The position numbers were made by a program, and so were the translations under genes. From the NCBI GenBank assembly GCA_029953675.1, contig JAMWBK010000006.1, positions 1,674,001 through 1,738,000 on the forward strand: 64,000 nucleotides of DNA. The letters run 5' to 3'. Below the pieces are notes generated by a model that was not told the origin of the DNA, searched no databases, and saw only the letters and a program-made list of their open reading frames with translations. Source of the DNA: Rhodosorus marinus CCMP1338 (Eukaryota; Plantae; Rhodophyta). Shown here one piece after another: positions 4,005 to 23,878 of this stretch; position 1 is the first letter of the stretch; the number at the start of each line of letters is the position of its first letter.

Positions 4005-7000
4005 CTACTCCTGGTCCCGGCGGAGCCCTGAGAAGAGGAATTGGGTGGACATCCTTCCGACGGAGGTCGCAAAAGAGGACGCGATTTTCACAACATCCGA
4101 CTCCTCCGTTCCGTTATTGTTTGACCCCACTTCCGAAGCCTTCACAATACCACCAGTCTCCACCTCGAGGGTTTGCAGGGCTGCTTTCGTGGAGTAGGCT
4201 CGCCGCTGATACGAAGATGGCAATGGCGCTGGCAGGTATTGGAATCGCGGCGCTGGCTGTGCAAGGTTCAGCAATGAAGATGCCTTAAAGCCTTCAGAAA
4301 GAGACTAAAAAGATGCCAGAAGGAACCTAAACTTAAGAGACTGCGACCGAAACAAAGTTTTCCAGCTCACAGGTCTCCCTTACCGGTCTCATTGCGGTCA
4401 CTCGCTTTCCTTGATGAGTGCGCGTAAACGCCCCGAGCACAACTGAAGATTTTGCGAAAGCAGCTTTAACCGCTGTCAGAATTTTCTCGTCAGAATACGC
4501 CAATTCGACGGGGTCGACCAAGTTGACCAAGGCCGCCTCGACTACCCTAAGCTCGTTCCTTCCCACCCCTGAAGTCGTCGCGTTCTGCTTGGCCTCTAAG
4601 CCCCTGAAAACTGCCCCCAAGAATCTAACATCGAAGATCGCTTGTAGAATGGCAATCTAGGAGGGAAAGGAGCGTCGAGCTTGAGCATCACACGCAGGCA
4701 AGGTACACAAGCTCTTGCTTACAATACCTTTCCAAAACGCCCTCCACTAACTTGCTTGTAAGCGTTGACGACCCCGCTCACAAGGCAATCAGCAAAGCTC
4801 CTCACAGCATCTATTGGCAGTGCAGAACCTCCTGCGTAACTAACTGTCCAACAAGAATTGATCGCAAAGTCATACGCCGGATAGGAGGGCATTGCTGGGT
4901 ATACCCACGGCCCAGAGTCTTCCTGAACTTTCTCCCAGCCGCGATCTAATTCCAGACCTTAGAAAGGGGAGCGAATGGGTCCGAGTTCAGATCGTTACAT
5001 AAGACCTTTCGAACACATATGAAGACGGTCGTCATACCGCTCTGATCTACTATGAGAGTCGTTAAAGTCCTCTCCAATTCCTGAGCAACGCCTCGCAATG
5101 CAACAGCGTACGTTTCAACCGCGATTTCCGTGGCCTGTGCGAAGAAAATCTGTGCAGCGTTTACAGAATCGTTGTACGACTCTGTGCCCTCATCCTCGCC
5201 GAATCGAAAGACTTCCGACAGGGCGTTCGATGTGCTCAGGTTCTGATACACGTGTGCTATCAGGAACAGCTTCTCCATCTGTTCCAGGTCGGAGGTTTGC
5301 AAGCAATGAGCATTTTGCCCAGAGATAATCAATTTTGAAGCCAGAGATTGCCGACGTACCGGAACTGAAAGTTCTTGAGATTTGACGTCACCAACTCCCT
5401 GACTTTCAAGCGCCATCCTCAATTCGTTACTCACGAGTCTAACAAGCAGCGGACGAAATCACCTAGATTGTAAGGGGATATCATGAACCAAAAATTTCAA
5501 GCTCCTCTTTACGTACTGATTTTTCATTTCCAGCAGCCTTGGGGCGGCCTCAGCGCACTTTGCTCTACACGCCGTTGCCACTTCAGGTATACTAGAGCTG
5601 ATCGCCGAGAGGTCCTGGACTACCGTAAGTCGAACCTGGTTGTCAAACTCTTCGTTCAGCTTCCCAGCGAGTCCGGGCTAAACAAAACGGACGAGTTGAA
5701 TCAGATATCCTTGCCTACCGACCGGAGCCGACCCAACACGTAGAGCGACCATATGAAAACCAGAATACATACCTGAGCGACGTACTCCTTGGTTAAACCA
5801 GATGCTCCCTTTGGTTTGCCAGGGCTAGGCTCCTGGTTCCACATGGTCTTCCCCAGGTTTCCGTCTCCTTCTTTCGTCTCGGAAATTGACGTGACCGTTG
5901 CAGCAACGTTCGTTAAGAAGGACCCAAAACATTTTTCGATGATTTCGCGAGTTCTTTGCTCCGCGCGGGACTTGATCGTGGGTTGGAAGAGAGCCTCGAG
6001 GCCATCGGGAGAGGTAAACTTGAACGCTGCTGACTTCGCCCTGTTCAGTTCTTCGTCACTAGTGTCTTTGGGAACGGACCAAAAAAAAGGTGCAACTGAG
6101 TCACCACTTGCAGCATTTGACGTCTTCGTACTGTTTCGTGCGTTCTGATCTAACAACGACGTCGGCCAACGACAGTAGCTCTTTTCTTTCAATGATCTTC
6201 AGAATACGTACCATACAGTGGCGCCAGCGCCTGCTGCGCCTCACGAAGCTTTCCCCCGGTTTTGGCTTCGGACAGGGATATATCTGTGGCTTTCTGAATC
6301 CTCGGGCTAGCCTTCTGCAGCCAGTCCGTGACGATTCGCGTCAACCGATCTGGATGTACATCATCGAATCTTTTCGTAGCAGAAACGACCCTCAAGATGT
6401 CCTCATCTGCCTCTTCCCGAGGTACTAGCAGGATCTTGTACACATCACAGAGCAGATCACGGAATCCTGATGTTGCCGATCGAATCGATTCAGCTGGTGC
6501 TGCTTTTCCGGTTGTAAGCGTCCTCTCAATCCCCTCAAGCCGTGCATTCAAGAATTCCCAGATCACGTCCTCGAAGGATGAGGCTGAAATAGTCAATAAT
6601 GCACACAGGGCACCAGTATATTCCTAGCAATTCGGTGAAGCAATTCCGCAACCGATGAGACCCACATGCAACAGCCAAGCCTACGACAACGACATTGATA
6701 AAATCGTCTTACCCTGGCTCCAAGTCCTTCCGCTCGAAATTTTTGTTTCGCAGCGCTGTTGATGTCCTCACGAAAGGGCGCAATTTCCTTCCATAAGAAA
6801 GTGACGAATGCTTTGGACGTCTTCGCGTTGCCATCCTCCAACAGGGACTAATTCCATTGTACACAGAGGGGGAGGGGGAGGATTTAGGTTCTTTCCGTTC
6901 TGGTACGTCCGGCTTAACAAGGGCATGTTGATCATCAGGGTGTATGAGCTTACCTTTCTTGCCGCCTCTGCACCCGCAAAGCGCTGGCTTGCTTCGAAAA

Positions 7001-7693
7001 TTTTATTCCCATCCAAACTCGCAAACAGCTGCTCTCGGGTATCTACCAGAAACTTCAGTTGAGAGCCAATGCTGTACGCTGCCTTCTGTCTCACTAGCTC
7101 GTTGTCTTCTTTTTCCCTGTATTCATATCACGCGAGTGCGGGTAACGTAAATTTAGCGCGGGGTATCATGTGTTCCTCTCCCGTTTAGCGAGCAAGGGTC
7201 CAAGCGTTGGATCCGTGCCACTAACTAACACCTACCGTGCGATTGTGAGGGTGGCTTCGTCTATCTCGCTTCTTAGCGATTTTTGCAGCTCTCGAGCTTT
7301 CCTCTCCACTTCTAGCATGACTTTCAGCACTGCTTCAACGCCTTGATCCATTGATGCAACACCGGTAGCTGTATCTATCAGATCTCGGTACCTGATCCGG
7401 GGAACAAAGAAGTTCACGATCGACAAAAATCAGCTCCTATCCTTGAAGAGAAAACTTGGCAATCTGATGGAATCACTCTCAGCTCACCTTGTGCCCAGCA
7501 TCTTTCTGAGCTGTGCACTCTTTTCGTCAGCATCGGTTCTCAACTTCACCTCAATATTCTTAATCTCCGCGACACGTTTCGTTCGAAACATCGCAGACGC
7601 TTCCGCAGCAGCAACAGGAGAGGATTCAGCATTTCCATCCCTCCCACGCCCCGAACCATCGCCAATGTACCCAAACTGCGAGCCAGCCTCCAT
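4005..7693 (-). CDS. COG1: Conserved oligomeric Golgi complex subunit 1 (Vps51/COG1 family), multi-exon
   Basis: N-terminal MFRTKRVAEIKNIEVKLRTDADEKSAQLRKMLGTR|YRDLIDTA and AYSIGSQLKFLVDTREQLFASLD match the COG1 N-terminus. Helical exons continue to about 4005; the 3' end is approximate. Confidence 0.8.
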
Positions 7694-8349
7694 CGCGAGA
7701 GACTGCCTCCTCCAACTCCCCAAAACAAAACAAAAGAAAAAACCCAAAACCCAACGAAATCTCCAGAATCCTAAGACTGCTTCATGATAGATACCGTCTT
7801 CAATCCACGACGATCCAAGAATACAGAGGCCCTTTTCTCTTAACACATATCAAAGTCCCTCCTTCTTACGCACGATCCCACGCACCCTAGAAGATCTCCT
7901 TCAGCAGACAAACTTCCTAACCAAAAACTTCCCACCCACGCAAGCTTAGGAACTTCAGGGTGAGAATCTCCGTCAAGCATCAGAAAGAAAGTATCTAACA
8001 TATCTTCATTATCTTCAGATATAGAGCCAAAAGAGAAATATATGTATAAATCTTATATATCTAAAAATTTGAAAAGATATCTTTGATATATTTAACGTGA
8101 ATGAACTGTTTCAGGGTGCGCAACGTCGATATCTGTTTCGTTTGAGGAAGACGACTATGGTGTGGTTGGTTGCTGCTCTTTTCGTAATGAACGGCTACTT
8201 TTCTTGTTGAGAGTTCGCCGACTTAGGTCTCGCACCTGCGCGACGACTGGAACCTCCTCATATGATCTTCAAGACGGGTCCGAATCGTATCGCAAAGTAT
8301 GCTGAAGGGGAAGGTCAAGCGTCGTCGCTTCTGGGGTGGTTGGGTAAGG

Positions 8350-11012
8350 AACGTTCACACATAGTGGGTTTTCTGTCTCGGCGGGGTTGGGGAGGCCAAA
8401 GATGAACGATCTAAGTTAAATAGTACCATTTATACTTGCTTTGAATAACTATCATGGCAGCAGCACATCACTAGGGTAAAACCTTACCTGTCTCACGACT
8501 TCTACGGCGGTTGTTGTGGATCGATCGCTGTTCCTTTTTGGTTTGCTGGATGAGGTACTGAGTGATCGGCTCGAGTTCGCTAGTTTTCTTCGATGGATCG
8601 GGGATGGCAGAAATTTTGAGCTTCTGTTTTTCGCTGTGGCTGTTCGTGGTGAAGCCCGCTGGTTGTCCGGGTCTGATAGAGTTGTGGTCGTGATGTCCAA
8701 ACTACGGAAGCTGCTTTGCGACAGTTTGGTCTCACCGACAGTTTACCGACGAGGGATTTTTGGGAGGCTCGGTGAAGAGCGGCTTGGAGCAGCGACGGTT
8801 GTAATTGACTATGAAGTTTCTGTCCCTCAAGTTCTATTTTGCACCTCGTGGGAGGCGCGCTCAGGTTCTTTCCGATGAATAGTCTGAAGATTTGGTGGTC
8901 ACCACGGTTGTGGACGCTTTGCTAAAGAGCTCCCTAGTGGAGCCCATCAAGAGGGAATAAGGAATCTATTTATGCGTTAAAAATAACCTAATGGGTTGCG
9001 TGGCTACGATCTACTAGAGGGACGATCTCATAGTTCCCCAGCCCTAGACTAACGTAATCCTAAGATGGCACTCAGCAGATCACAGAGAAGACTTGATGAG
9101 TGCTGTGTTTGAGGCTGAATTTTGGACGCCAGTTTGGAACAGAGCGAGTGAGAGAGTGCGTGTGAGGATTCGCCACGGTGAATGAGTGATTCGTTATGGC
9201 CTTCCGCCCAGCGAGTCTTCCGACACTTTCGAGCTGTATGTGGGATGATACTTGGTCACCGTGGTACCTGATGCACAGTAACGACTCAAGTTTCCGAACT
9301 ATTATTAAACGATTGGATGGTTTGGAGGCACAGATCGAGTCTATCGCATCTCGAAGCGTCTTTCTTGTTTCAAGCTAGGCGATGTTGAAAGAGGCAATCT
9401 GTTTCCGTCCCCCCGCAGGAATGCTACTGGGTTAGAGCGAGTCTTTGTCCAGGTAGAACCACACACGAATTGGTTAACTAGTGGCTGAATCCTCAGGACT
9501 TTTCGTTTGGTCCTGCTTGCTTTCGTTGGCAGCAGAGTACTTTTCAAAACACTTTGCAACGTCGATGCTACTGTTTGATCGCCGGGATTAACTTTCCAAC
9601 CTCTGATCGACGGGATCCGTCCCTTTCGAAGAACTCTGAAGAGGTTGTTATATGGCCCGGCAATAGTGAGTACCAGACTCGCAATTGTACCATGGTTCAG
9701 ATCAATAATTTACTTGGACGAGCCTTCACGCAGTTTGGGACATCCCGCTCGCTGTCTTGTCAACTCCTTAAATACTGCCAAAATACATTGAAGAGCAAGA
9801 CAACTGACAAACCTTGAATAGATGATGAGATTCAGTGTCTCTCTTGCTTTTTCATGGCCTCCGCAGCGCCAAGAAGCATCTTCAGAGCCCCGTGCCGATC
9901 CTCGTCTTCGGTATCATTATCTTGATCGTTTTCTTCTGTCTCGTTTGGAACCTAGAAGAAGCGGTTGACAAGAGGGGTTAGCATTAAGCTCAACATCAGT
10001 CGCGTTTTAAGCAACGAAAGCGTGTCTTGGAAAAGAGCAAATGTACCTCGCCTCCCTCGTCCTCACGCCTCGGCATGTCATACAACAGTTTATTATACAT
10101 TTTGAAGTGCCTTCTGCGAAACAGTCGAGATATATGTCCCGGTCCATTGAGTTTTCGTCTCAGAAAAGCAGGCATGGAAGACGTTAACGCTTCTTCCTTC
10201 TTCCCTTGACGCTTCGAAATCGGTCTGTTCACTGAACCTTTCGACCTTGTGTGCTCTCCGGGTGAAGGTTTGGTATCGCCTCCAGACAGGCCAGGTGGTA
10301 GTTGAAAGACCTTGAGGTCCTTCGTATTCCCGTCTTCGGACTCTTTCATGTTTTTTTCCTTCGCCGATGCTTTAGTGTCCTTGGGGAGGGTTGAAAAAAC
10401 AACTGGTTTAGTACATCCAGGAGAGCTCTTCAATGCAACCACCGCGCTCATGACAATACATATCCTACGCAGCAGCGGTGCAAACAACGAAGTAACACTG
10501 ACCTTGTCCTTGAGTATGTCCGGCTTCGAACCCGACGCTTTCTCTGGAAGCCTTTCAAGCACTCTCTTGTCAAACGGTATATCGGTTTCTTCATCGTCCA
10601 TTTGCGAGTCCTCAAGATTCTCTCTCCCATGGGCTGCGCAGAAATAGTGACAAGTCAAGACGAACAGCAGGATCAGTTTCCCGCAAGCTCTAAGAAAAGC
10701 CTACGGTATCCAATGGCTCGCTTTGTCAAACATTCGACGTACAAGGAGTCGGGCTCATCCAAAGGAGATTGACGAAATCCAAACCCACAAGCAACCAAGA
10801 AAAAGGCAGTTGAGTGTTTAACTTACCTTCAAAAAGGTCGTCAGGACTCGCATCCTGCATGAGAGAGTTCAATCTCTTCTGAAGGTCGGTATCTGAAGTC
10901 AGCAATCCAGGGCCTCGCCTTCTAAACCGTTTCCTCGGCTGCGGCGTTTTTCTCTGGGCCCCTCTCAGCCCTTGATCTTTCCTCTTTGGAAAATAATTAT
11001 CCATAGCCATCA
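8350..11012 (-). CDS. One or two hypothetical low-complexity proteins (exon structure unresolved)
   Basis: ATG-initiated K/R-rich exon near 11012, a 220-aa open frame at 9996-10658, an acidic exon ending at a possible stop near 9830, and further exon-like frames at 9200-9560 and 8450-8880. No family recognised. Confidence 0.4.
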
Positions 11013-16124: not shown

Positions 16125-17827
16125 ATGACTGTTGGCCAGGCAGTCCTGTACCACTTGGGGAGTTGCGAACAGCTTTGTCATATGTGTTGCATCTGGCCTT
16201 CCTGTCGCTCTTCGCATCGTGAAAAGCTTAACAGCGCTTTCATTATGATGCGTAAACGCGAACTTGTCCGTAGGGAGGTCAAGCTCACCCCAACCGTTCC
16301 AGCCCATCAGCCAGAACTCGATCACGCAAACCTCAGATCTCTACTGGTCCCAACGGAATCGATTTCGCTGATTGTCCACAGATTCCTTCCATTGATCTTA
16401 GCTGTGCCCCACCCTCTTGACAGCTAACTTGATCAGCAGTCTCTTGATCTTGACTGAGTTCGCATTGATTTTACCAAACAAGGGTTTCCAAATACTTGGG
16501 AATGTTCCTCGCCTGCGCCTGCTGAGAACTACGAAGGAGGAAAGCAGCTTGCACGGGTTATTTTTAACGTTCCGAAGAACGTTTCCAAATGTGAGCAGGG
16601 AGGGGCTGTGATGCTGGCAGGTGCCGATGGACCCATCGCGGAGTGTCGTGTTCCATTGCCATGTTCGTCAATTCAGACCTGGGCCGGGAGCAGTTCCTCG
16701 TTCGGCATTGTTGCTCTCTCTGGATCTGAAGCCAGCAGCAGGAGGTCTCCCCGCGGCCATGTGACTCTCGTGGACGTAAAGGGCCTAGCTTTGAACGTGC
16801 GCAGCTGTAAGCTCACAAACGCTCGCGTCCTCGACGGATGCTTGTTTGTTGTGGATTACCGCCTATATCTAGCTGCAGCGGACGCGCAGGGATATTTGAC
16901 AGTTTGGAATTATCTTGCTTTTGACTCTCCACTCAGAGCATGGCAAGCCCATACCGGATCGGTAGGTTTCCTCGACCACGTTCAACAATAAACGGGCGAG
17001 CAAATAACGGAAATTTGCTCTGGAACTGTTCTCCTAAAGGCTGAACGCGTCATTCGCAGACCACGCACCCCATTCCAATGCCTCTCGTGCGGCGGTGACG
17101 GGAAAGCAAGGCTATGGGATGTTCCAAGGGTCACTGAAATCCAAGCTTTCGGGTACGCCGTAACAAACCAGAGCCAACTCGCCCGAATGCTCTGACCCCA
17201 ACACCCTATCCACTCCCCATTCTGATTCTCAGCATAGGACGAGACCATCGACGGGTTGTAACGGACATGGCTTGCAGCCCTGCCGGCGACGCTTTTGGAG
17301 CTACAAGTGGCGAGGAATGCTATCTACTGGACATCCGCAGCAACAGAACCTTGTCGACGATTGGTATAAGGTCCGAAGCTTGCTCATGTGCTTGGAGCGA
17401 AGATGGGTCTACAATCGCCGTCGGAGGTGCGGATGGGGTGCTGGCACTGTTCGACGTACGGATGAGCGGTAACCCTTTTACTGCTGTTCAGACTTTCACG
17501 TACGTAGAAGAAAACTTACAGCTAGACCCCACCGCCAGCCAGACCAGTGCGTGAAGCTCACGAGCTGAAATTTCCTGGTTCCTGTGCAGTGGTAGGATAA
17601 GACGAGTTCGCTGGCATCGTGACAATTTGTTAACCTGCGGACAAGATGCACCTGCTGGAATCTGGAGGCGAGCATCTCAACTAGGAAACAGATTCGTGAG
17701 GACGAAGCTTCTTGACAGTCATCAAGGATGTTTATCGGATGTGGATTCTTTCAGCACTGATAACATTGTGACTTGCGGGTTGGATCGTAGTATGAAGCTG
17801 TGGTCGTATCCAGCAGCAAGAATGTAA
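16125..17827 (+). CDS. WD40-repeat protein, possibly with an N-terminal F-box-like motif
   Basis: WD repeats AHTGSVGFL, IAVGGADGVLALFDVR and SHQGCLSDV...IVTCGLDRSMKLWS. The N-terminal YHLGSCEQLCHMCCIW is loosely F-box-like. Start codon uncertain. Confidence 0.65.
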
Positions 17828-17942: not shown

Positions 17943-19701
17943 TCATTGGAGCTTTCCAACATTCTTCATTACCATAACTCGCGGCTCGGTCATGTCTTCT
18001 ATCGCGTACCGAATTCCTTCACGCCCCAGTCCAGAATCCTTAACTCCTCCATAGGGTTGGGAGTCAACTCGAACTGATGGCACCTCGTTGATAACAACCC
18101 CGCCTGCTTCGATATTCTCAAATGCGAAGAAAGCTTTGTTCACGTTCCGTGTAAAGACGCCCGCCTGAAGCCCAAACCTGGACGCGTTAACACGCTCAAC
18201 TACGTTCTCAAAGTCATCATAAGATTCAATACAGGCTACCGGTCCAAAAACTTCGTTAGAGTAAACGTCACACTGATGAGGAGCATTTTCCATCACCGTC
18301 GCCGGATAGAATCGCCCGTTGCGAACACCGCCACACAGTACCTGACATCGCCAAGGGCCGAGCTATCGTTAGCTACGATTCCGCTTCAAGGCGTGTAGGA
18401 GGCCCAGGCTTGTCTGTTCGTAACGCTCAACCCTCCGTAGCATTTGTGCTGGCATACCTTTCCTCCAGCGGCCTCTGCTTCTTCAACCCATCGCTCCACA
18501 CGGTCAGCTTCTTTTACATCGATCATAGGTCCAATGAATGTAGCTTCGTCCCGCGGGTCTCCCATTCTCAGCTTCTGTGAGGCTGCGACGATCGCATCTC
18601 GAACTCGTCCATAAATGCTAGCATTCACAAAGATCCTTTGAACAGATATGCAGCTCTGTCCAGATTGATAAAACGCGCCATGGATGACTGATTTCACAAC
18701 CGCATCGATGTCCGGTACGACCTCGTCGATGATGCACGCAGCATTTCCACCAAGTTCCAGCGTAACCTGATCGAAAAAACAAACCAGTTTCGGTGCATTC
18801 CTGAGCAAGGCCTCTCGAGTTGTGCGGGCATCTCGCCTGCCATAGTCCAGCGCTCACCTTCTTCTTGCCAGCGCGTTCCTTCATCTTCCATCCGACATCG
18901 GGCGAGCCGGTGAATGAAAGCATCTTGAATCTCGGGTCTACAGTGAAGAGGTCTGCGGATGCTCTGGTACACGGCAGAATAGAAAAGGCACCCGCAGGGA
19001 GCTCTGGAGCTTTCGAAAGGATATCACCAATGATCAGAGCTCCTATGGGTGTTCGGGATGCCGGTTTCATCACGAACGGGCACCCGACTGCGAGAGCCGG
19101 AGCTATTTTATGAGCGGCCAAGTTCAAGGGAAAGTTGAAAGGCGACACCATGGAAATAGCTCCAAGCGGAAAACGTCTCACGATCGATGAAAAGCCTGGA
19201 TCCGAGAGAAACGTTGTAATACTCTGAGCGAGTTTCACATGGGGGGGCACGGCTCGTAGCAGGTGAACAATGATTACCTTCGACTCTAGATGAAATATCA
19301 AGCGGAGCATACTCTCCGTAGATTCTTACTGACTCCTCCGCTGCAATTGTGAAGGTATCGATTAGACGACCAACCTCGCCACGAGCGTCCTTGATCGGTT
19401 TGCCAGCCTCTGCGCAGAGTGCCAACGCTAGCTCTTCGAATCTCTCCTTCATTTCGACTACGGCCCTCTCCAGCACAGCCTTGCGCTTGTAGCTCGGCAT
19501 TGCTGCCATCTGCTTAGATGCTCTGTCTGCCGCAGCAATTGCCTTATCGACAACTGCTTCATCCGCCTGTGCGCATACTGCGTGAACTTCTCCAGTCGCC
19601 TTGTCTATAACCTCAAGGTCCTCATTTGCGAACACCGGTACGTTGCCAAGGTAATATGGATACTTCAGCGGTCCTGTCGAGCCCTTAGGAGCAGCCTGTT
19701 T
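17943..19701 (-). other. ALDH21: ALDH21-family-like (NADP+ succinic-semialdehyde dehydrogenase-like) half of the fusion
   Basis: Close resemblance, from memory, to moss ALDH21: ESVRIYGE.PLDIS, AVGCPFV.KPASRTP, KERAGKKKV.LELGGNA, RVDSQPYGG.KDSG..REG..YA..DM, C-terminal MKNVGKL. Confidence 0.8.
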
Positions 19702-22007
19702 CTATTGGAAACATGTGCAATTGAGTGAAATAGGATACGGCGAAGGGCACAGCCAAACCAAACCAGCTCACCTCCACCTTCACTGGTACGGGGGCCGGGA
19801 CTGCTACTGGTGCTGGTTCAGGTTTCGGCTCTGGCTCCTTATCCATTGGCGCCGGTACCTCCACTGGCTCCCGTGCCACAGGAATCTTGGGCTTCAAGGA
19901 TACCAATTCCTTGACTCTCTCTGCCAGAACTGGGCCGAGAATTTCCGTTGATAGTGTGTAGTCGACCGGGATCTCTACTATGTGGACGCCCTTCAGATTG
20001 ATGACCTTCTCCAGAGTCGGCTCGAGCTCTTCTGAAGAATTGACCCTGTGGCCATGAGCGCCAAAGCTCTCAGCAAGAGCCACAAAGTCGGGATTCACGA
20101 TGCCTGCGCAGCAATTCGTTCTCCTCGCTTAGCTTACGACCAGCGAAGACTCTTAACCAGGGGTACATACCTAAGCCCCATTTTTGGAAACCAGCGGTGT
20201 GCTGTTTCCATTCTATCATTCCGTATGCATTATCGTTAAGGACTATGCACGTCACGTCAATTCCGTGCTCAACAGCTGTGGCAATCTCCTGACTGTTCAT
20301 GGCAAACCCTCCATCACCGCACACCCCGAAGACCTTATGGTCCGGATACTTCAGTTTGACGGCCATGGCGGACGGAAGTCCAGCTCCCATAGTTGCCAGA
20401 GCATTGTCTAACAGCAACGTATTCTGACGATAGGTCTTATACATTCGAGCAAACCTGAAGTTGTTTTTTAGACAGATCCATCCGCAGAGAACCAGTATCA
20501 TTGCTTAGAGTCGCACCAGATAAGGTTCTCTTGACGTGTTTATGGGTCCTTACCAAACCTTGTACATTCCATTGTCAAGACAAACCACGCCATCCTCTGG
20601 CATAGCCTGTCTGATAGCCGCAATTACGCGCTGCGGTGTAAACGGATACCTCGTATCCTGCCAGTGATCAGCAACATGCTTGTCCACAAACTGTTTGACA
20701 GTCATGAACCAGCCGAAATCCCAATGTGGCTGGGGTTCCTTTATCACCTCTTTGATTTGCCAAAGAGCGTTTGCTATATCTCCCACGACATCACAGTGAG
20801 GGAAGTAAACTTCATCCACTTCGCTTGCATAGAAGTTGATGTGCAAAACCTGTTGCCGATCGGCCATTTGACAACTCGGATCAGAACCGGGCCTACGGGC
20901 GGAGCTTAGGTGCTGCGAGGTCGGGTTCCAAGACACGTACCTTGGTTCTGTCATCCCTGTGCATGAAGAAAGGAGGCTTTTCCACAGTATCATGCCCACA
21001 ATTGATGATGAGGTCCGCCTCGTCGGAAGCGCAGTGGACGTAATCATTAGCGGATATAGCTGCTGTCCCAATGAACAGCGGATGCCTCTCGTCGATAACA
21101 CCCTTGCCCTGCTGGGTCGTAATAAATGGTATTCCGAGTGCATCGACAAATTGGCGGAGCGCTCTTGCAGTCCTGGCACGGTTTGCCCCAGCAGCGATGC
21201 AAAGCAGTGGGGATCGAGCCTCGACTATCATTTTCACTGCGGAATCGATCGCCTTCATCTCAGCAATAGCACGACGAACCTACGCGGGATTGGATTATGC
21301 AGAAATATCGATTTAGGATCGACTAAGGTGGGAGGGTTGCACAGATTTTCGGCTCAATGCCCACCGGGAAGACGGGAAACGGCGGATGGTAGGGAACAGA
21401 CTCGCCAGCTATATCCTCCGGAATTTCAAGGTGAACTGGGCCTGGTTTTTCAGTCTCTGCTATCTTCGTTGACCTGCGAACCAAAGATAGCAGCAGTTCT
21501 CCCTCTGAAACCTGCTTGGTGAACTTGCATAGCGGGGTCATCATCTGTACTATGTCGACGATCTGAAAAGATCCCTGTTTTGATGCTCTTATTGGCTTCT
21601 GCCCTGTGATCATCATCATGGGATAGCCTCCTAGCTGAGAATAGGCCGCGCACGTGGTGAAATTGGTAGCTCCGGGGCCCAAGGTACTCAGACAGACGCC
21701 AATCTTTTCAATTGCGAGCAAGGATCCAAATTTTCAGCTGAGAAGAAACAGTTTTTCGCGGGGAGCGTGGCCATAAACAGGCACGACGCACCTTTCCAGT
21801 GACCCGTCCAATCGTAGCAGCCATAAACCCAGCTGCTTGCTCGTGCTTGCATACTACCAGCTTGATTTTCTTGCTCTTTCGAAGGGAATCCAGAACATCC
21901 AGATTCTCCTCACCAGGCAATCCGAACACGAACTCAACGCCCTCGTTCTCCAAGCTTTCAACGAACAAGTCTGAAGCTCGGACCTCGGCTGCCATGGTGG
22001 TCATCAT
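17943..22007 (-). CDS. Fusion protein: ThDP-dependent acetolactate-synthase-like (2-oxoacid decarboxylase) domain + ALDH21-like aldehyde dehydrogenase; 10 exons, roughly 1100 aa
   Basis: All 9 GT-AG introns splice in frame when traced by hand. ThDP part: GLPGEENL, KHEQAAGFMA, GVCLSTLGPGATN, GDGGFAMN...NDNAYGMI. ALDH part: SPFNFPLNL, KPASRTP, SFTGS, LELGGNA, FYQSGQSC, EVFGPV, RVDSQPYGG. The junction intron 19771-19702 gives ...PVKVE|KQAAPKGSTGPLKYPYYLG... Confidence 0.88.
19772..22007 (-). other. ThDP-enzyme half of the fusion (ALS-large-subunit-like) including the Pro/Glu/Ala linker
   Basis: PYR, middle and PP domain motifs as listed for the whole gene; linker PKIPVAREPVEVPAPMDKEPEPKPEPAPVAVPAPVPVKVE. 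Confidence 0.9.
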
Positions 22008-23244: not shown

Positions 23245-23878
23245 CCCATCTCCGACCGAACAGTTATCTCTGCTTCAAATTCGCGCCCTTGGTGCACAAC
23301 TGCGAGAGAGGCCTATGCGATCACGGTCTCAGAGCTCGAAGGCCTGTCTGGAGGACTCCTTCATCGCCAGGATACCACAGAAAGCGAGGCAGCAGCTGTC
23401 GAACAGCGGATCCGCCTAACCTGCCGGTCCTATTCAAAAAACCCTCCCTCGAGGATGTCACCATCACGCCTTTGAGGTCCTGACTCAAGATGCAACGCTC
23501 GAAGATGTAGCCGCACGAGAAATTCGATCGGGACAGGAGCAGGTTGTGCCGCAGTACACTTCTCAGACGTGCAAGAACACTGGACTGTGTGATGTTGTCT
23601 CGGAGACTACTCTGCTTCCACCCTGGTGGAAGGCGACGGGTTGAATCCGTGTCCGAGTAGTAAATTTCAAAACCCCCCAAAGGCAGGTTAGGTTGATGTG
23701 CTGTTCGACAGCCATGGCCTCGCTTTCTGTTATATCCTGGTGACAAGGGAGTCCTCCACACAGGCCTTTTTTTTTCCAGCTCCGAGACCGTGATCGCATA
23801 AGCCTCTCTGGCAGTCGTGCGCCCAAGAGCACAAATTTGATACGGAAACCGAGATAATTGTTCGTGGCGGAGACGGAG
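23245..23878. repeat. Imperfect inverted repeat (arms about 23245-23425 and 23682-23878)
   Basis: The arms align on opposite strands (e.g. GAGAGGCCTATGCGATCACGGTCTC vs GAGAGGCTTATGCGATCACGGTCTC) and translate to related peptides. Confidence 0.85.

Follow-up and report, generated by a model that had tools for sequence, protein, structure and literature searches.

The nearest assayed relatives of the N-terminal, thiamine-dependent (ThDP) half of the protein analysed here come from cyanobacteria. Among them, MiKGD has been characterised biochemically as a 2-oxoglutarate (2-OG) decarboxylase (PMC10418658), and the group, called KGD, OgdA or 2-OGDC, includes SynPCC7002_A2770, sll1981, MAE_06010 and MiAbW_01735. 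These proteins are three-domain ALS-like ThDP enzymes of the NCBIfam family NF006187. They show the N-terminal signature GLPGEENL...GVCLSTLGPGATN (GLPGEENLDVL...GVCLSTLGPGATN in MiKGD), the motif NDxxYG(L/M)IEWK, lysines equivalent to Lys386 and Lys471 of MiKGD, and a genetic coupling to an aldehyde dehydrogenase (ALDH). KGD and the succinic semialdehyde (SSA) dehydrogenase (SSADH) are encoded by separate genes, and in 45 of 69 informative loci the SSADH gene lies directly upstream of KGD.

In the case of ALDH21, the moss enzyme PpALDH21 is a cytosolic, NADP+-dependent SSADH and the sole member that has been assayed. Its Arg121, Tyr296 and Arg457 bind the carboxylate of SSA (bioRxiv 10.64898/2026.01.13.699213). 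The Physcomitrium patens protein, ALDH21A1, stands alone and has about 500 residues. Its Arg228 reportedly belongs to the loop closing over the 2'-phosphate of NADP+ (Kopecna et al. 2017).

A eukaryotic case in which a 2-OG decarboxylase and an SSADH replace the 2-OG dehydrogenase (OGDH) complex is known from Euglena (PMC10418658, PMC6630311). The chemistry of the Euglena and mycobacterial Kgd enzymes with their SSADH is the same as the one proposed below. These Kgd proteins are homologues of the OGDH E1 component and not ALS-like, and to our knowledge they are not fused to a dehydrogenase.

The protein described here shares the listed features of cyanobacterial KGD. It differs in being fused to its ALDH, in its host and compartment (a eukaryote and probably its cytosol), and in the ALDH itself: the cyanobacterial partner is of the PRK09406 type, shows about 31% identity and has other residues at the substrate-binding positions.

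Gene structure and the junction between the two halves

The gene occupies positions 22007-17943 on the minus strand of the window, i.e. the whole stretch of 64,000 nucleotides from Rhodosorus marinus that was analysed, with the start and stop codons at the exact ends of this interval. Nine introns of 67-116 nt, all GT...AG, interrupt the raw reading frames. In the splice model the ten exons form an open coding sequence of 3270 nt, corresponding to 1089 amino acids. Its features are the following.

17943..22007, minus strand: whole coding region, ATG to TGA, 10 exons, 1089 aa (splice model, Pfam, transcript P0001)
21792..22007, minus strand: exon 1, aa 1-72, start of the ThDP pyrimidine-binding domain, GLPGEENL, predicted catalytic Glu56 (21842-21840)
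21365..21703, minus strand: exon 2, aa 73-185, GVCLSTLGPGATN and remainder of TPP_enzyme_N (splice model, Pfam)
20941..21279, minus strand: exon 3, aa 186-298, TPP_enzyme_M central domain (splice model, Pfam)
20554..20849, minus strand: exon 4, aa 299-397, last part of the middle domain, first part of TPP_enzyme_C
20561-20559, minus strand: in the exon 4 motif DNGMYK, Lys395, equivalent to MiKGD Lys386 (alignment)
20171..20454, minus strand: exon 5, aa 397-491, ThDP/Mg motif GDGG (Asp444, 20315-20313) ... NDN (PMC10418658)
20207-20205, minus strand: in the exon 5 motif YGMIEWK, Lys480, equivalent to MiKGD Lys471 (alignment, PMC10418658)
19772..20103, minus strand: exon 6, aa 492-602, ThDP fold ending near aa 561 (window position 19895)
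from 19894, minus strand: linker in exon 6, rich in Pro/Glu/Lys/Val, no stop before the donor site
19696..19771, minus strand: intron 6, 76 nt, GTGAGC...AACAG, phase 0 (splice model, transcript P0001)
19278..19695, minus strand: exon 7, aa 603-741, last part of the linker and, beginning near Leu612 (19668), the ALDH fold
19368-19366, minus strand: in GEVGR of exon 7, Arg712, equivalent to PpALDH21 Arg121 (alignment)
18858..19195, minus strand: exon 8, aa 742-854, SPFNFP, cofactor domain
18965-18963, minus strand: in CTRASAD of exon 8, Arg819, equivalent to PpALDH21 Arg228 (alignment)
18458..18766, minus strand: exon 9, aa 855-957, predicted general base Glu858 (18757-18755)
18670-18668, minus strand: in exon 9, Tyr887, equivalent to PpALDH21 Tyr296 (alignment)
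18652-18650, minus strand: in exon 9, predicted catalytic Cys893 (alignment)
17943..18341, minus strand: exon 10, aa 958-1089 and stop (splice model)
18071-18069, minus strand: in PSVRVDSQ of exon 10, Arg1048, equivalent to PpALDH21 Arg457 (alignment)

Pfam identified TPP_enzyme_N (11-126), TPP_enzyme_M (196-329), TPP_enzyme_C (390-536) and Aldedh (627-1078); the E-values lie between 6e-27 and 3e-138. A Pro-rich linker of 50 residues separates the three ThDP-enzyme domains from the complete ALDH. The critical junction between the ThDP/linker part and the ALDH part is intron 6. Exon 6 ends in ...PVPVKVE and reaches its GT donor without a stop codon, while exon 7 opens with AAPKGSTGPLKYPYY... 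and the first ATG appears only well within the ALDH fold. The protein P0001, derived from a Rhodosorus marinus transcriptome (MMETSP) and 95% identical, spans the junction (...PVPVKVEAAPKGSTGPLKYPYY...). Its splice is that of the gene model, and the fusion is therefore carried on one mRNA.

A single gene thus encodes the ThDP-ALDH fusion, an architecture far beyond chance. The fusion had been proposed in the sequence-only reading, and it is upheld by the open spliced frame, the junction-spanning transcript and the recurrence of the architecture. The motifs quoted there were all found as well: the ThDP half has GLPGEENL together with GVCLSTLGPGATN, and the ALDH half has GEVGRLID, CTRASAD, FYQSGQSC and PSVRVDSQ.

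Relationships and active sites of the two halves

The ALDH half, which makes up the C-terminal half of the 1089 residues, is 57% identical to PpALDH21 (PDB 5mz5) over the whole ALDH fold. This alignment scores 620 bits, compared to 267 bits for E. coli GabD (3jz4) and 212 for human ALDH5A1. In the tree, the query lies within an ALDH21 clade of 42 rows (SH-aLRT 98), together with PpALDH21A1 (PDB 5mz5/5mz8/5n5s). The fold is complete (Aldedh 627-1078 at 3e-138), with Glu858 in ELGGNA and Cys893 in GQSC. Arg712, Tyr887, Arg1048 and Arg819 align with Arg121, Tyr296, Arg457 and Arg228 of PpALDH21, and these four residues, like the catalytic Glu and Cys, are shared with the moss enzyme and kept in every eukaryotic fused homologue examined. 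Alignment and tree place the ALDH half in the ALDH21 family, as had been suggested from the Arg/Tyr/Arg trio and the Arg228 equivalent, and it probably prefers NADP+.

In the case of the ThDP half, the NF006187 model (cut-off 509) gave 779 bits for the query, 878 for MiKGD and 870 for the ThDP half of a Melainabacteria protein. By these profile scores, the ThDP half belongs to the cyanobacterial 2-OG-decarboxylase family. The N-terminal signature, named in the sequence-only reading as that of the cyanobacterial enzymes, is indeed common to the query and the characterised 2-OG decarboxylases, and the query and MiKGD both pass NF006187. In the ThDP tree, whose deep branches are weakly supported, a superclade of 57 rows containing the query is separate from the KGD group (42 rows), and the AlsS clade is also separate. 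A tree joining the query superclade with KGD and leaving AlsS outside was 44 lnL better than a short free search (p-AU 0.84), again with weak deep branches. The affiliation of the ALDH half with ALDH21 was recovered; the ThDP half fell in a sister superclade outside the KGD clade.

To describe the pocket at the residue level, the query was aligned with MiKGD. Glu50, Lys386, Ala408, Met410, Asp435, Asp462, Tyr465, Lys471 and Tyr531 of MiKGD are kept in constant register. Three of these, Glu50, Asp435 and Asp462, for which mutagenesis has been reported (PMC10418658), align with Glu56, Asp444 and Asp471 of the query. Lys386 and Lys471 are modelled 2-OG contacts; AlsS lacks both and has Tyr/Gln/His and Gln there, and as these lysines occur broadly across the family outside AlsS, they are not finely discriminating. 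Five pocket positions differ systematically from MiKGD: Q254S, V382N, A384M, H385Y and L467M. Within the 2-OG pocket, which was described from an AlphaFold model with docking and not from a crystal structure (PMC10418658), Lys386, Ala408 and Lys471 are kept, while Gln254, Val382 and Leu467 are Ser, Asn and Met in the query; the modelled ThDP contacts Ala384 and His385 are Met and Tyr. A literature search found no assayed protein from the ThDP subclade to which the query belongs. Given an identity to MiKGD of only 41%, a place in the adjacent clade and the changes at these five positions, 2-OG as the substrate of the ThDP half is an inference.

The same pocket differences and the separate subclade would fit another reading, in which the two steps are alike but the ThDP half decarboxylates a different anionic 2-oxo acid, such as 2-oxoadipate, oxaloacetate, 4-hydroxy-2-oxoglutarate, sulfopyruvate or phosphonopyruvate, and the ALDH half acts on the semialdehyde that corresponds to it (glutarate, malonate, sulfoacetaldehyde or others). 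An Arg/Arg/Tyr trio could bind any distal anionic group, and the second-best NCBIfam match of the ALDH half is the sulfoacetaldehyde dehydrogenase SafD, although at 331 bits it is far below the cut-off of 700. Against this, the sole assayed ALDH21 is an SSADH, 57% identical to the query and with the same intact trio, and the nearest assayed relatives of the ThDP half, the KGDs, are reported to be strictly 2-OG-specific (PMC10418658). ALDH21-type genes also accompany both a KGD-type enzyme and an SSA-producing aromatic pathway. In Phycisphaerae, a KGD-type ThDP enzyme (52% identical to MiKGD) is clustered with an ALDH21-type ALDH (63% identical to the query). In Marinomonas, an ALDH21-type gene (62% identical) adjoins the HpcH/HpaI aldolase gene of a homoprotocatechuate cluster, and in this pathway the aldolase releases SSA. 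Overall, we regard a different 2-oxo acid as rather unlikely.

It is much less probable that the ThDP half is an acetolactate synthase or similar carboligase, fused to an unrelated ALDH for co-expression. The names point this way: NCBIfam calls NF006187 'acetolactate synthase large subunit', and 13bb_A, at 42% identity the closest entry with a solved structure, bears the name 'acetolactate synthase' from its depositors. The HQ motif of KGD and AlsS is moreover FQ in the query, as in AHAS. However, MiKGD scores higher than the query on NF006187, so that the family name is no evidence for ALS activity. The query did not pass the AlsS models NF006378 (401.6 vs 510) and TIGR02418 (353.9 vs 551.1) nor the AHAS model TIGR00118 (361 vs 538), and all isozyme models were far below their cut-offs. 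AlsS and AHAS share superfamily and fold with the query (270-290 and 200-230 bits, respectively, in the PDB search), but they are not coupled to an ALDH, and a regulatory subunit is absent here. As acetolactate is not an aldehyde, a carboligase would also leave unexplained the repeated fusion and adjacency to carboxylate-aldehyde ALDHs.

Fusions and gene neighbourhoods in other organisms

Among eukaryotes, a query-type ThDP enzyme fused to ALDH21 was found in 29-31 clusters, counted at 90% identity. It occurs in labyrinthulomycetes and, among photosynthetic lineages, in red algae, chlorophytes, streptophyte algae, liverworts and ferns. That two neighbouring, separately transcribed genes were misjoined by annotation is extremely improbable: the junction does fall within an intron, and Physcomitrium carries both activities as separate genes, but the ThDP part has no stop and the ALDH part no start codon ahead of its fold, a GT-AG intron restores the reading frame, the Rhodosorus transcript crosses the junction, and about 30 eukaryotic clusters, several from transcriptomes, show the same architecture. 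The stand-alone Physcomitrium ThDP homologue P0079 (61% identical) is nested among the fused streptophyte proteins, a position that points to secondary fission.

Outside eukaryotes, a query-type ThDP enzyme is fused to another ALDH with the Arg/Tyr/Arg trio in 42 clusters of Melainabacteria/Candidatus Obscuribacter. These proteins of 1016-1048 aa, named 'acetolactate synthase large subunit', share the order of the query, with the ThDP part N-terminal and the ALDH C-terminal. Their ThDP part is of the same subfamily (57% identical) and forms, with the stand-alone P0128, a close outgroup to the eukaryotic fused clade. In contrast, the linker is short and the ALDH is of another subfamily (33-35% identical), with EHGG instead of ELGGN and an Asn at the Arg228 position, so that it is possibly NAD+-linked. 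The Melainabacteria fusion is independent of the eukaryotic one. One ThDP subfamily was therefore fused independently to two different carboxylate-aldehyde ALDHs, which argues for consecutive steps. The sequence-only reading had spoken of the fusion in one eukaryote; it is in fact widespread among eukaryotes and not a one-off.

Similar associations could be detected between separate genes. Query-type ThDP genes of Acidobacteria and of one further genome are followed 19-25 bp downstream by a gene for the ALDH type of the Melainabacteria fusion, with the Arg/Tyr/Arg trio. One of the three standalone bacterial ThDP homologues checked had no ALDH neighbour. The fusion proteins carry the names hypothetical protein, acetolactate synthase or GAPDH in their annotation. 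As proteins named 'acetolactate synthase large subunit' under NF006187 include proven 2-OG decarboxylases, that name is likely a misannotation. We found no paper describing a ThDP-ALDH21 fusion.

Proposed reaction and its wider meaning

The reading that we favour, with moderate confidence, is that of a bifunctional and probably cytosolic enzyme that would convert 2-OG via SSA to succinate while reducing NADP+. Firstly, the N-terminal ALS-like ThDP/Mg domain would decarboxylate 2-OG non-oxidatively to SSA and CO2. Secondly, the C-terminal ALDH21 domain, held on the flexible Pro-rich linker, would oxidise SSA to succinate and reduce NADP+. The net reaction would be 2-OG + NADP+ to succinate + CO2 + NADPH, without CoA or the OGDH complex. 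The reactive aldehyde would be kept near the domain that consumes it, and channelling may take place. Both parent enzymes, KGD and ALDH21, are homotetramers, so that a fused tetramer would be geometrically plausible. The Km of PpALDH21 for SSA, 181 uM, is rather high and counts against the conversion of 2-OG to succinate.

Regarding localisation, the protein starts without any N-terminal extension when compared to its relatives in bacteria, and its C-terminus (...NVGKLQ) carries no SKL-like signal. The missing extension, together with the cytosolic location of moss ALDH21, makes a cytosolic shunt likelier than closure of the mitochondrial TCA cycle, and the 'TCA bypass' initially envisaged is better read as such a shunt. 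The fusion protein is thus probably cytosolic.

On a larger scale, we consider it an evenly balanced proposition that a single-polypeptide, cytosolic, NADPH-yielding shunt from 2-OG to succinate is old and widespread in photosynthetic eukaryotes and labyrinthulomycetes, that the stress-inducible moss 'ALDH21' is a fission product of it and not primarily a GABA-shunt enzyme, and that the same coupling was fused independently in the non-photosynthetic Melainabacteria. If true, the 'cyanobacterial' TCA bypass would reach far beyond cyanobacteria. The natural fusion would also offer a ready two-step cassette for the production of succinate or four-carbon chemicals. Should the proposed chemistry apply, many algae as well as early-diverging land plants would bypass the OGDH complex on the way from 2-OG to succinate, gaining NADPH in place of NADH and succinyl-CoA. 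ALDH21, already used in transgenic work on drought and disease tolerance, would then be half of a 2-OG shunt, beyond its role as an outlet of the GABA shunt, and the carbon/nitrogen balance, through 2-OG, would be tied to redox supply under stress.

Structure of the fused gene and its transcript

On the minus strand, between positions 22007 and 17943 of the window, the raw ORF list consists of short ORFs chained across shifting frames, whose translations are first pieces of a ThDP enzyme and then pieces of an aldehyde dehydrogenase (ALDH). Exon boundaries of the fused gene were set at canonical GT...AG sites by reading the DNA. This gave 10 exons and 9 introns (67-116 nt each). The spliced coding sequence of 3270 nt is divisible by three, contains no internal stop and encodes a protein of 1089 aa (the query). 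The main features are:

Query aa 11-126: TPP_enzyme_N domain (Pfam)
Query aa 196-329: TPP_enzyme_M domain (Pfam)
Query aa 390-536: TPP_enzyme_C domain (Pfam)
Query aa 627-1078: Aldedh domain (Pfam)
19771-19696, minus strand: intron 6, at the join of the ThDP and ALDH halves (splice model)

The linker, residues 562-611, is rich in Pro, Glu, Lys, Ala and Val (KPKIPVAREPVEVPAPMDKEPEPKPEPAPVAVPAPVPVKVEAAPKGSTG). Exon 6 has no stop codon ahead of the intron 6 donor site, and exon 7 encodes a normal ALDH N-terminus (LKYPYYLGN...) from which an ATG of its own is absent.

In the database search, the spliced query matched P0001 best, a protein derived from an MMETSP transcript of the red alga Rhodosorus marinus (95% identical), which points to Rhodosorus or a near relative as the origin of the window. 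Across the junction it reads ...PVPVKVEAAPKGSTGPLKYPYY..., in exact agreement with the splice model. Its C-terminus, ...AAGGKVFQHKSYGGLRA, is a read-through of intron 9 (window translation GGKVCQHKCYGGLSV); the protein ends inside this intron (18457-18342) with ...GGKVFQHKSYGGLRA, and the final 132 residues of the ALDH domain are missing. The mRNA was therefore incompletely spliced or truncated at its 3' end, and the read-through also bears out the 3' boundary of exon 9. In the protein collection, all four Pfam domains were found together in proteins of about 1000-1400 aa in seventy-odd clusters (90% identity). Altogether, the spliced coding sequence, the junction-spanning P0001 and these further clusters bear out the single-polypeptide ThDP-ALDH fusion proposed in the sequence-only reading. 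Database names on the fused proteins include ‘hypothetical’, ‘acetolactate synthase’, ‘NADP-dependent GAPDH’ and ‘probable lactaldehyde dehydrogenase at C-terminal half’. The ThDP subfamily also occurs in other combinations in the cluster representatives P0094 and P0110, one with glutaredoxin/GST domains (649 aa) and one with an HSP20 domain (815 aa).

Regarding the surroundings of the gene, exon-like WD40/beta-propeller ORFs on the plus strand (16608-17827) converge on its 3' end with a gap of about 115 bp; none of their single-exon Pfam matches reaches the cut-offs, the E-values being weak at about 1e-3 to 6e-8. An inverted repeat (23291-23823) precedes the start codon by about 1.3 kb. Its arms of 87 nt (83% complementary) and 50 nt (88% complementary) are nested round a core of about 256 nt, which accounts for look-alike ORFs on both strands in this region.

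Identity of the two halves

In the case of the ALDH half, a PDB search returned Physcomitrium patens ALDH21 (PpALDH21; 5mz5/5mz8/5n5s) at the top with 620 bits, with three Burkholderia ‘aldehyde dehydrogenases’ close behind. The next families scored far lower (Methanocaldococcus lactaldehyde dehydrogenase, 291 bits; E. coli GabD, 267 bits). In PpALDH21, Arg121, Arg457 and Tyr296 are reported to bind the carboxylate of succinic semialdehyde (SSA) (preprint, bioRxiv 10.64898/2026.01.13.699213). After applying the offset of 18 between PDB chain and native numbering, query Arg712, Arg1048 and Tyr887 align to these three residues and Arg819 to Arg228, and the catalytic pair is Glu858 and Cys893. 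All these SSA-binding, Arg228-equivalent and catalytic residues are kept in every eukaryotic fused homologue aligned. Thus, alignment to PpALDH21 upholds the earlier view of an ALDH21-type dehydrogenase with two Arg and a Tyr intact, together with the Arg of CTRASAD. The tree of this half that had been called for was also built, and it placed the query inside a 42-row ALDH21 clade (SH-aLRT 98), which includes PpALDH21 and many stand-alone bacterial enzymes (60-65% identical).

Among the bacterial ALDH21-type genes, that of Marinomonas fungiae is part of a cluster for homoprotocatechuate meta-cleavage, where it adjoins an HpcH/HpaI aldolase gene. As the aldolase of this pathway releases SSA, the cluster fits an SSA dehydrogenase (SSADH) role for the ALDH21 family. 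In Permianibacter, the stand-alone ALDH21-type gene has a gene for an ATP-dependent PEPCK 1.4 kb away.

For the ThDP half, the best NCBIfam model was NF006187 (PRK08322, ‘acetolactate synthase large subunit’), with 778.6 bits against a cut-off of 509. This half fails both AlsS models (401.6, cut-off 510; 353.9, cut-off 551) and the AHAS model TIGR00118 (361, cut-off 538). A reference for the cyanobacterial ALS-like 2-oxoglutarate (2-OG) decarboxylase, KGD, was retrieved by translating the mutagenesis primers of the Microcystis KGD paper (PMC10418658) into three peptide stretches, which led to 80 cyanobacterial loci. The enzyme assayed in that paper, MiKGD of M. aeruginosa NIES-4325, is a 550-aa ORF at 6779-8450 of the Microcystis locus L025. 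This ORF matches the paper's numbering exactly (Glu50, Gln254, Val382, Ala384, His385, Lys386, Ala408, Met410, Asp435, Asp462, Tyr465, Leu467, Lys471 and Tyr531), so the identification is secure. MiKGD itself scores 877.8 bits on NF006187. The query and the assayed KGDs thus belong to one curated family, whose name is no indication of acetolactate synthesis; proteins named through this ‘equivalog’ model, fusions of Melainabacteria included, are probably misnamed.

The N-terminal signature is common to query and MiKGD (GLPGEENLDVL...GVCLSTLGPGATN in the latter), as had been stated for the cyanobacterial 2-OG decarboxylase, but the two share only 41% identity (222/543 aligned positions). Using the residues placed around 2-OG and ThDP in PMC10418658, Glu50, Lys386, Ala408, Met410, Asp435, Asp462, Tyr465, Lys471 and Tyr531 of the MiKGD pocket are kept in the query. 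It differs at five positions (Ser for Gln254, Asn for Val382, Met for Ala384, Tyr for His385 and Met for Leu467), and where KGD and AlsS have the motif HQ it has FQ. We considered whether Lys386 and Lys471 could serve as a signature specific for 2-OG. Among 134 family members, the AlsS clade (Tyr/Gln/His and Gln instead) and E. coli IlvI lack their equivalents, which are common across the rest of the family. This wide occurrence outside AlsS weakens the idea of a specific signature: the two lysines are compatible with a dicarboxylate substrate but non-diagnostic. PDB entry 13bb_A (‘acetolactate synthase’), 42% identical to the ThDP half, was treated as functionally uninformative.

To place this half, a tree was built from the full-length representatives that an exhaustive HMMER search recovered with the moss homologue as seed, together with the fused proteins, eight cyanobacterial KGDs, PDB 13bb, E. 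coli IlvI and an ancestral AlsS sequence transcribed from the displayed PDB-search alignment. A clade of 17 rows unites the eukaryotic sequences (SH-aLRT 96), and the stand-alone cluster representative P0128 is the first to join it. The following fork splits three ways, in unresolved order, and takes in the fused bacterial group; a group with Edaphobacter comes after it. The cyanobacterial KGDs form a tight clade within a separate 42-row group. A short free search put the AlsS clade beside the 57-row superclade of the query (weak SH-aLRT of 85). When the search was instead forced to unite the query superclade and the KGD group, AlsS excluded, the resulting tree had a log-likelihood 44 units higher (p-AU 0.84), and the AlsS placement was set aside for this reason. 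Our reading is that query-type and KGD-type enzymes would be sister superclades inside NF006187 with AlsS outside, the deep nodes being weakly supported. Regarding the proposed kinship with KGD, the better tree groups the query with the KGDs apart from AlsS, but outside the KGD clade itself.

Gene association across lineages

The strongest argument for the proposed chemistry is gene association. In Cyanobacteria, KGD is immediately preceded by a same-strand ALDH ORF in 45 of the 69 loci with enough upstream sequence. This SSADH is of the PRK09406 type and shares about 31% identity with the ALDH half of the query. In Phycisphaerae (locus L088), an ALDH21-type ALDH (63% identical to the ALDH half of the query) clusters with a ThDP enzyme that carries DVGAHKMW and YGLIEWKQ and shares 52% identity with MiKGD. 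ALDH21 partners both KGD-type and query-type ThDP enzymes. Between the two Phycisphaerae genes lies a pair of small ORFs (106 and 186 aa; L088 5937-7001), both hydrophobic and each terminating in a CxxCDY...G motif.

In Edaphobacter sp. (Acidobacteria; locus L084, 6103-11228), the order is PEPCK, a query-type ThDP enzyme (52% identical) and, 25 bp downstream, an ALDH. The PEPCK, a GTP-dependent PEP carboxykinase, is encoded on the strand of the ThDP-ALDH pair and 45 bp ahead of it, and the three genes may form an operon. In a second genome, a ThDP gene (57% identical) is followed after 19 bp by an Edaphobacter-type ALDH, with a DctP-family binding protein nearby. This ALDH type (EHGG motif) shares 33-35% identity with ALDH21; its Arg/Tyr/Arg trio is intact, but Asn takes the Arg228 position. 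Of three stand-alone bacterial ThDP homologues whose surroundings were inspected, one lacks an ALDH neighbour.

Query-type ThDP enzymes fused to EHGG-type ALDH make up 42 clusters. Their named members are Candidatus Obscuribacter and Melainabacteria, a lineage that is sister to cyanobacteria and non-photosynthetic. In eukaryotes, the fusion is to ALDH21 (29-31 clusters) and includes Mesotaenium, Spirogloea, Riccia, Calypogeia, Marchantia (partial gene model), Ceratopteris, Adiantum, Ostreobium, Bryopsis, Coccomyxa, Elliptochloris and Hondaea. Therefore, one ThDP subfamily was joined twice, independently, to two different ALDHs equipped to bind a carboxylated aldehyde.

Proposed function, evolution and meaning

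In the proposed mechanism, the ThDP half would decarboxylate 2-OG to SSA in a ThDP/Mg-dependent step, and the tethered ALDH21 domain would then oxidise SSA to succinate with NADP+. We consider this two-step chemistry of the query reasonably probable, although its key activity is one we infer. Since KGD and ALDH21 are both homotetramers, a tetrameric fusion is plausible, and SSA might be channelled within it.

Regarding location, the query begins nine residues ahead of the first conserved block, a start position shared by P0001 and by the cluster representative P0002 (74% identical). As there is no N-terminal extension and moss ALDH21 is described as cytosolic, a cytosolic shunt would be expected rather than mitochondrial cycle closure. 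Of the TCA bypass suggested at the outset, the two-step conversion is supported through gene association, and a route in the cytosol seems likelier than one that closes the cycle in mitochondria.

The groupings of the ALDH half (Rhodosorus with P0002; ulvophytes with trebouxiophytes; streptophytes; labyrinthulomycetes) mirror those of the ThDP half, a pattern that fits an old fusion inherited as a unit. The stand-alone moss ThDP homologue P0079 (P0079-P0082, Physcomitrium patens; 61% identical to the query) nests in the fused streptophyte clade (SH-aLRT 100), which suggests a secondary split in mosses. The separate moss ALDH21 could accordingly be a fission product of a fused ancestor, the position of PpALDH21 itself being poorly resolved in the tree.

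The two-step bypass in cyanobacteria and ALDH21 in moss are already known. In the searched literature, we found no description of the fusion or of a bifunctional KGD-SSADH in algae or Melainabacteria, nor of its breadth in eukaryotes and the parallel in Melainabacteria. Fusing consecutive enzymes is a familiar theme; in conclusion, the fusion described here is a solid lead that, if true, would change the understanding of ALDH21.
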